Sequence record: MZ475898.1
Strand: one strand, 5' to 3'
DNA: 64,000 nucleotides
Positions 17,641-27,460 of this stretch are shown here, piece by piece. Under the pieces are notes generated by a model, which ran no database searches, had not been told where the DNA came from, and saw nothing but the letters and a program-made list of their open reading frames with translations. The position numbers and the translations under genes were made by a program. How positions within the stretch are numbered: position 1 is the stretch's first letter; each line of letters opens with the position of its first letter.

Positions 17641-17677
17641 AAAGGGAGCCAGGAACACGCAGCTCCAAGCTCCCTTT
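17641..17677 (-). terminator. Intrinsic terminator
   Basis: AAAGGGAGC...GCTCCCTTT inverted repeat followed by a T-run on the minus strand. Confidence 0.65.
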
Positions 17678-23669: not shown

Positions 23670-24088
23670 TATTGGGCCCTCATGGCAAACGTAACTGACT
23701 GCGTGTTTTCCAGTTTAGGACAACGCCAGTTGATGGTACACACATAGGTCTGATCGTACTGAGCGCTCATACCACACGTTGTCCGTACATCGGTAACGTC
23801 ATCAGTCAACCCATTTGCCGGGTCTTCTAGTGCGATACGCATGTAGGTTGCAATCCACTGCGCGGTCTTATCATCAAACGGTTCGAACAGGTATTGATAG
23901 ACGTCAGCACCAAACGCTTCACGCCATTTACGTGAACGCTTTCTTGTACCAACAACCATCAGAATCTTTTGGACGATGCTGTCCATGTTCTGGACGTTAT
24001 CGCGCGGCTCAAGATGAATCCACACGTTAACGTCACAGTAAACACGCTCGGAGACAGGCACGTCAATCAAACGAATAGCGATAGCCAT
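23669..24088 (-). CDS. Baseplate wedge protein (gp25-like)
   Basis: 139 aa; ILMVVGTRKRSRKWREAFGADVYQYLFEPFD is a gp25 pattern. Confidence 0.8.
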   Translation of the reverse strand: MAIAIRLIDVPVSERVYCDVNVWIHLEPRDNVQNMDSIVQKILMVVGTRKRSRKWREAFGADVYQYLFEPFDDKTAQWIATYMRIALEDPANGLTDDVTDVRTTCGMSAQYDQTYVCTINWRCPKLENTQSVTFAMRAQ

Positions 24089-24378
24089 TAGCCAAATCTC
24101 ACGTTGTTGCTGCCATTGGATGCGGTGTCATTGCACGTATTAGGGTCACCATTGCGCTGAGCAGGCTTACCGTTAACACGCACAGTCGAACTGGAAATAG
24201 CGTAGCCCACATGCGGTGGTTTCTTAGGAGCTGAGTGCGGTTGATACGCATCTCCATGACGCACGCTCCCCTTACCATTGATCATGACATTAGCTGAGGC
24301 TTGTACTGCGACAACAGGGTAGAACCCGTTGTGTCCTGTGGACAGGTCTGCACCTAACCGAATTGCTTTCTGGCCCAT
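24088..24378 (-). CDS. PAAR spike-tip protein (gp5.4-like)
   Basis: 96 aa; AIRLGADLSTGH, VMINGKGSVRHGD, VRVNGKPAQRNGD with His/Cys metal ligands. Confidence 0.9.
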   Translation of the reverse strand: MGQKAIRLGADLSTGHNGFYPVVAVQASANVMINGKGSVRHGDAYQPHSAPKKPPHVGYAISSSTVRVNGKPAQRNGDPNTCNDTASNGSNNVRFG

Positions 24379-24401
24379 TGTTATTCTCCTCTGTTAGGCA
24401 C

Positions 24402-24409
24402 AAATTAGC
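24402..24409 (-). promoter_or_regulatory. Candidate late promoter motif GCTAATTT
   Basis: 24 nt upstream of the PAAR ATG, just after a terminator. Confidence 0.55.
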
Positions 24410-24425
24410 TTTATACGCGACAGAA

Positions 24426-24460
24426 ACAAAAACGGGCAGCCTAATGGCCACCCGGTTCTT
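24426..24460 (-). terminator. Intrinsic terminator
   Basis: Minus strand CGGGTGGC-CATTAG-GCTGCCCG followed by TTTTTGTTT. Confidence 0.65.
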
Positions 24461-24477
24461 GCGCTTGGATTTTGTCG

Positions 24478-24639
24478 CTATTCCCACATCCCTCGAACGT
24501 GTGCCACTGTGCCCTCAAGCACGTAGCCGGAATGAATAGAGGAAGGATAGACTGCCTGAGGTCCTTCCTGTAACGATAACAACCGACCAAGCATTGCGAT
24601 TGCTATCAGCGACAATATGAGCAGTACAATCGTCATCAT
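24478..24639 (-). CDS. Small membrane protein (53 aa, below ORF-track cutoff)
   Basis: Manual translation MMTIVLLILSLIAIAMLGRLLSLQEGPQAVYPSSIHSGYVLEGTVAHVRGMWE; purine-rich upstream; followed by a terminator. Confidence 0.45.
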   Translation of the reverse strand: MMTIVLLILSLIAIAMLGRLLSLQEGPQAVYPSSIHSGYVLEGTVAHVRGMWE

Positions 24640-24739
24640 ATCGTCGTTACTCTTCTTTTGGCCGAACGGTATTGCATGGTTTGATCAGATTACTCCGCTG
24701 CCTATCGTCCACGATCACTTAGGTTTCAGTTTCTTCATC

Positions 24740-25690
24740 TCTTTACCGCCTGCGCTGCGGTCAAGCCGCACACCCTGCACACGAATCTAACACAAAGGGG
24801 CGGAAGAACCTTTATGCTCGAAACATGCACCTGGCGAAGGAGGCCACGCATCGGTGATCTGCTGGTGTTAACACACTTTTAAGGCCTTTCTTTTGTGCAC
24901 CATTCAAGAGACAGGGCCACCAGCTAGTGATCTCTTTAAGGTATCGCACTGACTTGTGAACAAGTCACGGGTTGAAAACTATACACTTCCATATGCGCAT
25001 CGGGAGAAACGCATAAGGCTGATGCACAGCTTTGACTAAGAAGGATTGCGCCCGTCGCCCGACTTCACTTGGGTATCGACAATCGTTCTCTCTTACTCCC
25101 TTGAGTACAGCGCAAGGAACACTGAGTCAATGAGTAGTCTGCGGGTGTTACTCACTAGAGGGTGAAAGCCTTTTAGATTCTTTATTCTGCGCAGCACCTT
25201 AATGGACTTGAATCGCCCGCTGGAGTATCCAATAAGGCCCTCTCGGTTAGGCACCTTGCTGCACAGAAAACCCGGGGAGTACGTTACCATATAAAACGAC
25301 TCTCCCCAATGCATACCAGAGCGACTTGATATGCATCAGGCAGTGAACGTTTGCAGAAGTTCAACTGCTTTGCTTCCCGCAGAACTAGAGCCACACCGTT
25401 GAGTATACGGTCCACAGTAGTTACATGCCTAGAGGATATTGCCTTGGAGTTTATGTCCTATGGAATAACCGGGCTCGTCGCGTCGGTGCCACAGCAATAT
25501 TCTATCATGTGGTGCTGGGGTTGTTCCCCACATTATGCGATTGCTCGCAACCAGCTGGAGGTTTGCGTCCGATGAAAAGAATAACTAAGACGCAGATGAG
25601 CTTTTCAGAAAAAACGGCACACCAAGAAAATTGGCTAAACTCAGTGTGCGTATAGATATTACTATCTACAATTTTTATTTACAGATTTTT
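24740..25690. ncRNA. Candidate large structured non-coding RNA, class unidentified
   Basis: Only long gap in a gene-dense window; more than 12 short stems, nested helices, GNRA loops and a possible pseudoknot; no credible ORF; strand unresolved. Confidence 0.55.
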
Positions 25691-25696
25691 CTGAGA

Positions 25697-27460
25697 TTAG
25701 AATGCCTTACGTTCAACATTCGAATAATACGTTTCGTACGGCTCAGAATACAACTCAGGACCGCGCTGCGCACGCACAGTAACATAGCCTGTATGGCGAT
25801 TCACTGCGGTGATTTCGATAGTAGGCTGTTTAGGCTTAATCGTGCCGTAGATAGGCGCGTTCATCGTTGGTGGGTCTGTCTGAATCTTGTTTACAGATTG
25901 CAGTGCAGCACCAGACAGCGTAGGGAACTTAAAGCGCAATTCAGCACGCGTGCGCCCTGTAGCGATCTTGATACTACCCGCAGGCAGTTCAACGCCGCTC
26001 TGTTTCAAGTAAGCTGCGATGCGACGACCGATACCCGCCAATTGGTTCTTAGCGACAGGGTCCATCAGACCATCGAAACTAATAGCTGATTGCGGTTGAT
26101 TCACTGACAGATGCATACCAGTGTTGAAGTAGCCTTCTGCGAGGAAGCGATACAACTGACGAACAATCTCAGGAGTGTTCTGTGCGATCACAGGCGTCAA
26201 CAACTCAGGTGGGTTGGTCTTCATTGGGTCGCGGTATTCAACCTGACCTTGCGAGTAACCCATGCTGATATGCTTAACACGAGGATAAGCAGACTGCAAT
26301 GAACCAGTAGAGCGAATCAGGATAGAGCCAGACTTCGCTTGATCATACAGTTCATCGCTGGTGGTTGTTGAGAACAGGAAGTAGTCGGTAGGCACAGCCA
26401 TACGACCGATAGCTTCGATTGCTTTCGTCTGTACTTCTTTGATCGTCGAGCCGAACACTACACGACTGCGATTAGGCTGAGCGGTAGACACAGCAAAGAA
26501 TGCACCGTACACCACCTTCTGGTCTTTGACGATAGGCGAAGCAGACTTAACCTTTTGACCGCCTGGCAGTGGAGGTAGCTTAACGCCCACCAGCTTGCCT
26601 TTAGTGATTGCTTTGTTAGCAACAACAGGCTTCAAGGAAGACAGCAATTTGTTCAACTCAGACCCGTCAAGAATCTTCTCCAGCGGAACAACGAGGTTCT
26701 GCGGCAGATAGTGTTTCTTGCGCAACGTATAGATAACGGTGTCTTTCTTGATCTGTAACGGAGTAGCCATGTTACGACCAGCTTGACCAACAGGCTGGAA
26801 CGTATTCGCTTTGTCCTGACCAACAGAGCCGAACTCTTTGTCAAACACAGACTGACCGATGATGTTCGCTGCACGCAGATGACCACGCACGTTGAACACA
26901 ATCTTAGGTTCATCTTTCATGCGCAACTCATAGCGGTCACGCGTCAGATAGACCATACTGAACTTGTCGCCTTTCTCCAGCTCAAGGTCATACTCATCGT
27001 TAGCGTCATCGATAACAACTTTCTTACCCTGATAGGTAGCGTACACGCGAGCGGCAGCAGACTCCGAAGCAATCTTCAACGCTACGCCACAGTTAGACAG
27101 CGCGGTAGCATAGTTGGTTGCGTGGAACAGCGCGTCGTTCGATTCCGTGATAGCGACTTCTTTACCGCGTACGCCCAGCGCAAGGTGGATAGCGCTAGAG
27201 CTGGACATGAACACAGTGTGACCTGTATCTTCATGCTTACCAGCAAAGGACATACCACTAACACGCGACACAGACAGCGCATTCAGGTGCGGAGTAGTGA
27301 ACGTATCACCCGCAGCAAAGTCAAAGATTTCACCTTGACGCCACGCGTAACCGATGTTGTTTGAACTCAAGCCAACAAACGCATCACCCACCTGTCGAAT
27401 CGTAGTAGGGATAATGCTGAGATCGCGGACGATCTGATTTTGTTTCTGAATGATGGTCAT
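25697..27460 (-). CDS. Putative virion-internal protein with Ser-motif-rich leader
   Basis: 587 aa; leader with several S-x-S motifs ending ASESA, then the shared ~70-aa domain. Confidence 0.7.
   Translation of the reverse strand: MTIIQKQNQIVRDLSIIPTTIRQVGDAFVGLSSNNIGYAWRQGEIFDFAAGDTFTTPHLNALSVSRVSGMSFAGKHEDTGHTVFMSSSSAIHLALGVRGKEVAITESNDALFHATNYATALSNCGVALKIASESAAARVYATYQGKKVVIDDANDEYDLELEKGDKFSMVYLTRDRYELRMKDEPKIVFNVRGHLRAANIIGQSVFDKEFGSVGQDKANTFQPVGQAGRNMATPLQIKKDTVIYTLRKKHYLPQNLVVPLEKILDGSELNKLLSSLKPVVANKAITKGKLVGVKLPPLPGGQKVKSASPIVKDQKVVYGAFFAVSTAQPNRSRVVFGSTIKEVQTKAIEAIGRMAVPTDYFLFSTTTSDELYDQAKSGSILIRSTGSLQSAYPRVKHISMGYSQGQVEYRDPMKTNPPELLTPVIAQNTPEIVRQLYRFLAEGYFNTGMHLSVNQPQSAISFDGLMDPVAKNQLAGIGRRIAAYLKQSGVELPAGSIKIATGRTRAELRFKFPTLSGAALQSVNKIQTDPPTMNAPIYGTIKPKQPTIEITAVNRHTGYVTVRAQRGPELYSEPYETYYSNVERKAF

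Follow-up and report, generated by a model that had tools for sequence, protein, structure and literature searches.

A putative new family of large structured RNA in an unannotated gap of Erwinia and Dickeya jumbo phage genomes

The Erwinia jumbo phage pEa_SNUABM_25 (MZ475898.1, 263 kb) harbors a gap of 1318 nt (24379-25696) in which GenBank annotates nothing. Coordinates refer to the window, i.e. the whole stretch of 64,000 nt that was analysed, in which a position equals the record position minus 62000. According to the GenBank annotation, the gap separates a PAAR (tail-spike) gene (24088-24378, minus strand) from a gene encoding a 587-aa protein (25697-27460, minus strand). All 50 genes annotated between positions 1 and 49000 are located on the minus strand, and every other spacer among them measures at most 93 nt; the gap is indeed the only long one, as an initial annotation of the window had remarked. 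The same annotation had proposed that it encodes a structured non-coding RNA of about 1 kb, possibly of a new type. Covariation among relatives, the lack of a coding signal and the lack of a match in Rfam support this proposal, and the gap looks like the site of a real, new family of large structured phage RNA belonging to a lineage of Erwinia and Dickeya jumbo phages.

Moving away from the gap on its upstream side, the genes encode the 587-aa protein, which possesses a KMPT-N domain, a 144-aa protein and a thymidylate kinase. Downstream, the order on the minus strand is PAAR, a gp25-like protein, a wedge protein and a 1508-aa tail protein. Since nucleotide-metabolism genes and genes of unknown function lie on one side and the PAAR, gp25 and wedge genes on the other, the gap represents a module boundary, outside the interior of the baseplate cluster to which it had originally been assigned. 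To note, the KMPT-N domain is recognized by Pfam PF20294 with E = 8e-20, while the PHROG of the whole protein is of unknown function; the 587-aa gene is the one immediately upstream of the RNA in every genus examined.

Comparison of the gap between genomes reveals DNA that is constrained without being translated. Matches found by tblastx between divergent gaps are spread evenly over all six frames, which rules out a hidden conserved open reading frame (ORF). Each frame holds 15-28 stops in every genome and none of the stop codons is missing, which rules out stop-codon recoding as well as a single long interrupted frame. The period-3 power of substitutions is at most 0.9 throughout 24619-25698, compared to 23-98 in both flanking genes. 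As the mean column variability of the gap (0.21-0.36) is below that of third codon positions (~0.45), the region is under constraint. Over about 1 kb, the DNA is thus non-coding yet under purifying selection; the non-coding character assigned to it initially holds, with the exception of a 53-aa ORF near the 3’ end that is described below.

These data also bear on the idea that the gap consists of lost genes in neutral decay, or of several micro-ORFs. Three small genes, gp112, gp111 and gp110, are indeed found in the same interval, between the same flanking genes, in Yoloswag, Rivsvirus, Salmondvirus and the metagenomic loci L051 and L052, and scattered small ORFs are annotated within the gap in some GenBank records. 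However, tblastn with the gp112, gp111 and gp110 proteins finds nothing in the gap, and the annotated ORFs shift in place and strand between genomes and are not accompanied by a period-3 signal. Neutral decay is moreover incompatible with a variability lower than that of third codon positions and with the more than 100 compensatory pairs presented below, and is highly improbable. The micro-ORF set, which the initial annotation had named as an alternative to its own proposal, is contradicted by the absent period-3 signal, the inconsistent ORFs and the compensatory pairs.

The fold is shared by 16 homologues that represent about seven lineages and show 50-99% identity. Fourteen non-redundant homologues, aligned on the minus strand and trimmed from 1701 columns (alignment A2), yield an RNAalifold consensus of 215 pairs, 103 of which exhibit compensatory double changes. 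In a comparison with 40 shuffled alignments, whose columns were permuted within classes of conservation and gaps, the consensus energy of -168.8 corresponds to z = -20 and the covariance term to z = +24. A second control, in which the 3’ partners are slid by 1-3 columns, preserves the relatedness among the sequences: the covariation score drops from 0.363 to at most 0.09, while the proportion of non-pairs rises from the observed 8.5% to at least 60%.

Three covariance models covering separate domains were then re-aligned to all genomes, with 500 shuffles each. In the core model R1 (alignment A5), 95.4% of the cells are paired (84.1 ± 0.8 in shuffles) and 20 pairs harbor double changes (10.0 ± 1.8 in shuffles). 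The corresponding values are 96.2% (83.6 ± 0.9) and 24 pairs (10.5 ± 2.0) for the 5’ domain model R2 (alignment A8), and 94.4% (76.6 ± 0.8) and 34 pairs (18.9 ± 1.9) for the 3’ module model R3 (alignment A9). For none of the models does any of the 500 shuffles reach the observed values, and all three score far above every slid-partner version. Covariation in relatives, a check that the initial annotation had suggested, is therefore present in 14-16 homologues, and the base pairs appear to be kept by compensatory substitutions beyond what relatedness gives.

Several caveats apply to this conclusion. A de novo search for single-pair covariation over all column pairs returns 1618 candidate pairs, just 36 of which fall within the structure; because the sequences amount to about seven lineages only, single-pair covariation is non-specific. 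The alignments behind the pair counts were fitted to the structures and lean towards the models, and the covariation statistics are shuffle and slid-partner controls rather than phylogeny-aware tests. Single-sequence folding of the two minus-strand halves gives z values of -1.77 and -0.65, not clearly beyond shuffles, as compared to -1.93 (25141-25652) and -0.16 for the plus-strand halves. In sliding windows of 150 nt, the mean z is about -0.8 on either strand, slightly below that of the coding flanks. The structure is evident from comparison only, not from single-sequence thermodynamics. The description of the gap as highly structured thus stands as far as the comparative signal is concerned, which goes beyond chance, but not for single-sequence folding, which is unremarkable against shuffles on both strands.

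The conserved pairs also indicate the strand. Read on the minus strand, they comprise 420 G-U cells and 31 A-C cells. The consensus energy of the minus strand is about twice that of the plus strand (-85.2), and its covariance term is more than four times larger. Because G-U cells largely outnumber A-C cells and the minus consensus has twice the energy, the RNA is best placed on the minus strand, i.e. the gene strand. The initial annotation had leaned towards a plus-strand RNA, antisense to the gene array. This option would draw on the hairpin 25155-76, specific to Snuvirus, which displays a GAAA loop on the plus strand and is scored as terminator-like there, and on the z value of -1.93 quoted above for one plus-strand half. 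Conversely, reading the structure on the plus strand halves the consensus energy, reduces the covariance term to a quarter and introduces 420 A-C mismatches; the 25155-76 hairpin is missing in all other lineages, and the terminator of the unit is on the minus strand. A plus-strand RNA is therefore extremely unlikely. The plus-strand hairpin and U run near 25675, once viewed as a possible transcript end, belong to an invariant block with which the minus-strand unit begins.

The same pair counts are informative about elements acting at the DNA level (origins of replication, packaging sites, recombination hotspots), in which the stems would be cruciforms or protein-binding sites. A unique long non-coding stretch might be expected of such an element, and the AT-rich block just mentioned, 33 nt long, with dyad symmetry and invariant without covariation, would suit a protein-binding DNA site. 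DNA hairpins, however, would not tolerate G-T pairs on one strand, as reflected by the ratio of 420 to 31 cells. No iterons or tandem repeats are observed, the sole match of a Tandem Repeats Finder scan being a 13-nt, 2-copy repeat inside the 33-nt block, and neither GC content nor skew changes across the gap. The presence of a terminator and of a small ORF suits a transcription unit instead, and an element of this type is very unlikely. The replication origin that the initial annotation had considered is contradicted by the G-U asymmetry, the absence of iterons and the unchanged skew.

On the basis of conservation, covariation and the terminator, the whole transcription unit would span 24424-25687 on the minus strand and comprise the 33-nt block, a structured RNA of about 1.0 kb, the small ORF and the terminator. 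The feature thus extends past the coordinates originally given (24740-25690), over about 24424-25687. From 5’ to 3’ on the minus strand, the unit is composed of the block, a hairpin termed P1, a 5’ domain, a central domain, hairpin H24, a linker with helices H25-H27, a 3’ module, the peptide ORF and the terminator. The comparison argues for a fold of more than 30 helices, partly built from duplicated modules.

P1 (25617-25649, minus) has a 10-bp stem in the window. A hairpin of 10-14 bp occurs at this place in every homologue, with a wholly different stem sequence, and the same applies to the hairpin 24950-67 in the linker; the global alignment had blurred both. Six consecutive U come after P1 (to about 25606) in the Snuvirus lineage but in no other, and in these phages P1 with its U run looks like an intrinsic terminator or attenuator at the start of the RNA. 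The 5’ domain (25375-25599, minus), defined by RNAalifold and model R2, assembles helices H03-H10 and includes a branched sub-domain (25375-25513). The central domain (25026-25376, minus), defined by RNAalifold and model R1, contains helices H12-H23 with invariant loops and is closed by the long-range helix H11, which pairs 25376-25372 with 25030-25026.

Hairpin H24 (24984-25024, minus; RNAalifold and model R1) consists of 16 pairs, nine of which covary; in the R1 test, where it is helix 7, 9/12 pairs display double changes. The Alexandravirus group and Salmondvirus JA29 share a conserved 11-nt loop, which is different in this window, Y3 and mg28. The linker (24861-24983, minus) comprises H25-H27, predicted by RNAalifold, and the 24950-67 hairpin. 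In H25, the pair types GC, AU and UA alternate and no cell is broken. The 3’ module, or module C (24692-24860, minus; model R3), contains helices H28-H32 and a nearly invariant, unpaired CCUCC-type motif.

Part of this architecture arose by duplication. Model R3, although built on the 3’ module, also matches a segment of the central domain (25041-25140, minus; E = 1.9e-7), termed module B, and it matches the module B site in 12/13 other genomes that hold the 3’ module. Both modules share a closing helix that differs between them by compensatory changes. Likewise, the H24 model also matches H14 (25306-25339), making H24 a paralogue of H14.

About 12 of the 16 stems proposed in the initial annotation coincide with covarying helices, and four are unsupported as drawn. 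The conserved ones are 24861-67/24918-24 (H25), 24992-25015 (H24), 25054-80 (H22/H23), 25094-107 (part of H20/H21), 25131-54 (H18), 25191-262 (H16/H17), 25274-307 (H15), 25309-36 (H14), 25340-68 (H12/H13, part of it being an insertion found in Snuvirus only), 25516-30 and 25536-49 (both within H04-H06) and 25617-49 (P1). The stem 24950-67 is the linker hairpin whose sequence differs in each homologue. Among the others, 25155-76, the GAAA hairpin, is an insertion confined to the Snuvirus lineage; in place of 25433-59, the consensus has a long-range helix (25510-25489 with 25447-25423); and 25653-68 falls within the invariant 33-nt block, which does not covary. Snuvirus, represented by this window and pEa_SNUABM_7, possesses two hairpin-forming insertions of its own, at 25155-25176 and about 25345-25360, which are lineage-specific decorations of the RNA.

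Besides the helices, some predicted-unpaired motifs are strongly conserved on the minus strand. CCUCC-type motifs are located at about 24836-24846, where the motif of the 3’ module is absent from Y3, and at about 25553-25561, where it is invariant in 14/14 homologues. They are complementary to the purine-rich ribosome-binding sites of this window. An AGCGG motif occurs in three conserved loops or arms: the P1 loop of Alexandraviruses, the loop at about 25215-25225, and about 24920-24926. Both types of motif may be binding sites.

At its 5’ end, the unit starts with the AT-rich 33-nt block (25655-25687, minus), which adjoins the stop codon of the 587-aa gene and displays 94% column identity. 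Matches covering at least 80% of it are found solely in 57 records of this phage group, at one place each. The most divergent homologue breaks 2/8 pairs of its dyad. In the Yoloswag-type genomes, the block is present in two copies, one ahead of the RNA and the other about 50 nt ahead of the peptide ORF; each copy heads a unit, and an intrinsic terminator precedes the copy that heads the RNA. Because of this terminator and of the two unit-heading copies, the block behaves as a promoter or operator would, and it is a candidate for such a role, or else for the 5’ hairpin of the RNA.

The 3’ end is marked by an intrinsic terminator (24423-24454, minus), with a 9-bp stem (24454-24433, seven G-C pairs), a 4-nt loop and a U-rich tail (24432-24423). 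It is predicted from this G+C-rich hairpin and U run to be Rho-independent, and ranks first among terminator-like sites in 20 kb. The G-U pairs of the stem are valid on the minus strand only, and relatives exhibit a covarying stem with another tetraloop. Conserved as far as Salmondvirus, the terminator ends 44 nt ahead of the PAAR start. These 44 nt (24379-24422, minus) form the PAAR leader with the ribosome-binding region and show 80-89% column identity without frame preference. As the leader and the 33-nt block each occur only once in the 64 kb, recurrence does not confirm a promoter role for either of them. Elsewhere in the window, a second good intrinsic-terminator-like hairpin (17645-17666, minus) is located in the 89-nt spacer between the gene of the 1508-aa tail protein and the next gene. 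Sigma-70-type promoter-like sites are rarer between 15000 and 34900 than in shuffles (14 observed vs 22.1 ± 5.1), a deficit that is compatible with long co-directional transcription units or with promoters of a non-host type.

Between the 3’ module and the terminator lies an unannotated ORF of 53 aa (24478-24639, minus), which encodes a hydrophobic helix at the N terminus and a conserved motif at the C terminus. All 15 homologues retain an intact version of 47-53 aa, and the substitutions in its helix part look synonymous, while its period-3 signal is weak (1.7-3.8). The peptide is homologous to Yoloswag gp109 and has no match in Pfam or PHROG; a protein search retrieves one relative, in a phage contig nearly identical to pEa_SNUABM_30. 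To judge from its conservation, this ORF is a real small gene that the present record leaves unannotated.

The same flanking genes enclose an unannotated interval of 1267-1456 nt in Snuvirus, Alexandravirus (Erwinia phages and the Dickeya phage AD1) and Sasquatchvirus Y3. Outside Snuvirus, the identity of the gap to that of the window is 53-61%, and its conservation is patchy. Full-length homologues are present in Snuvirus, Sasquatchvirus, several sub-lineages of Alexandravirus and a metagenomic locus, L048, which represents a new lineage (about 65% identical); a metagenome scan with the neighboring protein revealed this one new full-length lineage and two distant loci. A very divergent partial contig (L028/L039) is about 53% identical. 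Core parts of the RNA are recognizable in Yoloswagvirus, Rivsvirus, two metagenomic jumbo-phage contigs and Salmondvirus JA29, where the interval reaches 2.0-2.3 kb and also contains three real small protein genes. A scan of IMG/VR with two RNA patterns gave matches in this phage group only, and the same two patterns have no match in 185,579 bacterial and archaeal species, each represented by one genome.

The Yoloswag-type interval (L033 2553-4700; L032; L051) is organized differently. Its first part encompasses the terminator, the 33-nt block and a two-module RNA of about 640 nt, including two tandem units of about 255 nt in Yoloswag; the remainder assembles the three small protein genes, the second block, the peptide ORF, about 180 nt of non-coding DNA and a terminator. 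The GenBank ORF pEaSNUABM5_00121 overlaps the Yoloswag-type RNA and is probably spurious.

Taken together, these features suggest that the gap probably encodes a stand-alone functional RNA. Its size and complexity favor this reading, and so do two features of the Yoloswag type: a terminator precedes the RNA and a different gene set follows it, and the peptide ORF has its own copy of the block. In this scheme, transcription would start at or just after the 33-nt block (about 25650-25687), co-directional with the neighboring genes, and the transcript would end at about 24424. The folded part of roughly 1 kb would be made during infection and act as an RNA in its own right, most likely as a protein-binding or self-assembling scaffold, by analogy with other large ornate RNAs.

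The main competitor is a giant cis-acting leader that would control the translation or stability of what follows, or the read-through past 24433-24454 into the PAAR-gp25-wedge-tail operon, in the manner of an attenuator or antiterminator. In every case, the RNA forms the 5’ part of a unit in which small proteins are encoded as well (here the 53-aa ORF), and in the Yoloswag type the next start codon directly follows the last RNA hairpin. Three further facts count against an independent RNA gene: no promoter-like site is found in the 44 nt between the terminator and the PAAR start, all genes are co-directional with very short spacers, and the 33-nt block itself has no sigma-70 consensus match in the promoter scan. 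Since the block neither matches sigma-70 nor recurs in the window, the transcription start point proposed above is provisional; read-through regulation retains some likelihood because the gene array is co-directional and the 44 nt contain no evident PAAR promoter.

Against a leader, the RNA is about 1 kb long and comprises duplicated modules and over 30 helices; we know of no leader that approaches this size and complexity. Different lineages retain the RNA core but have different downstream genes; in Yoloswag, the peptide ORF and PAAR are set apart from the RNA by three genes and the second copy of the 33-nt block. No covarying alternative pairing with a ribosome-binding site or a terminator is seen, and the window has a different ribosome-binding region but the same CCUCC motif. 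Given that three different protein genes follow the RNA core in the Yoloswag type, a leader adapted to a single gene is improbable; overall, a giant cis-leader is rather unlikely.

The gap might also contain a mobile ribozyme, for instance a self-splicing intron that is either degenerate or new. Such an RNA would be modular and ornate, as this one is, and introns of this size are common in phages. Nevertheless, no group I or group II model matches the gap, even at E = 10, and the gap separates two complete genes: one ends with its stop codon before it, and the other has its own ribosome-binding site and start codon after it. The element keeps the same place in all genera and occurs once per genome, and the gap lacks any homing-endonuclease or reverse-transcriptase ORF. 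A mobile ribozyme is thus extremely improbable.

Regarding the function of the stand-alone RNA, a more specific proposal can be put forward tentatively, by analogy and at somewhat less than even confidence. The RNA might represent a new class of ornate, modular jumbo-phage RNA of about 1 kb, working as an RNA machine or scaffold that self-assembles or binds phage proteins, possibly linked to the peptide, and acting in the late phase, in tail-tip assembly or in host handling. If confirmed, enterobacterial jumbo phages would thereby gain their first described large functional non-coding RNA, and the finding would illustrate that the “hypothetical” gaps of jumbo-phage genomes can hide RNA genes. 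A conserved membrane-peptide gene, so far unannotated, is added to these genomes as well. To our knowledge, very few bacterial or phage RNA classes exceed about 500 nt and are highly structured, and each large class so far (ribosomal RNAs, RNase P, self-splicing introns, OLE, GOLLD and ROOL) has proved to be a machine or an unusual assembly. The structure and expression of the present RNA can be directly examined, since the phages are cultivable and sequenced, the host is tractable, the bounds are clear, and at least seven diverged lineages as well as paralogous modules are at hand.

As anticipated in the initial annotation, the RNA does not belong to a known class. No Rfam family reaches its gathering score in the 64 kb, including GOLLD, ROOL, OLE, introns, RNase P and tmRNA, and at E ≤ 10 the only match in 24300-26000 is a chance snoRNA match. 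No tRNA or tmRNA is found by a scan of the window, and the literature search returned neither a description of this RNA nor a transcriptome of these phages. A ToxI-like or CRISPR-like repeat RNA was discarded, as there is no short direct-repeat array and no repeat family beyond chance.

The resemblances to GOLLD, ROOL and OLE discussed below are analogies, not membership, and other known systems share isolated features with the locus. The mRNAs of hok-like type I toxins also combine a small hydrophobic peptide ORF with a folded untranslated RNA before it and a terminator after it. Here, however, the leader is 1 kb long instead of 0.1-0.3 kb, the peptide has no family match, and the RNA core is kept in relatives in which other genes follow. 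The peptide is of the kind expected of a type I toxin-antitoxin system; no antisense RNA gene, conserved plus-strand promoter/terminator pair or plus-strand structure is found at the locus. The prohead (packaging) RNA of phage phi29 is a component of virion assembly. It is likewise a phage-encoded structured RNA, and the RNA described here heads a tail-tip/baseplate gene block, but the phi29 RNA is about six times shorter and shows no similarity; a comparable assembly role is pure conjecture.

OLE, together with the protein OapA, offers another parallel: the RNA is large and ornate, and a small membrane protein is encoded at the same locus. This analogy suggests an RNA-protein particle at the membrane. 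However, there is no match to the Rfam model, the peptide has 47-53 aa with one hydrophobic helix and lacks a Pfam or PHROG family, and the RNA is phage-borne while OLE is encoded in the chromosome of an extremophile. In Yoloswag, moreover, the RNA and the peptide are separate units, which weakens the parallel.

GOLLD and ROOL have been shown by cryo-EM to form RNA-only multimeric cages (bioRxiv 10.1101/2024.12.08.627333). Like the RNA of the Erwinia and Dickeya phages, they are phage-carried, many-helix RNAs on a scale of 0.6-1 kb, with strongly conserved loops and junctions, were found through their conservation, and have an unknown function. In contrast, the present RNA matches neither Rfam model in sequence or structure, has no tRNA genes nearby, and belongs to phages of Erwinia and Dickeya rather than of Firmicutes or of rumen and lake bacteria. 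At its predicted length, it is longer than GOLLD and ROOL, is partly composed of paralogous modules, and would share a single terminator-bounded unit with a small ORF.

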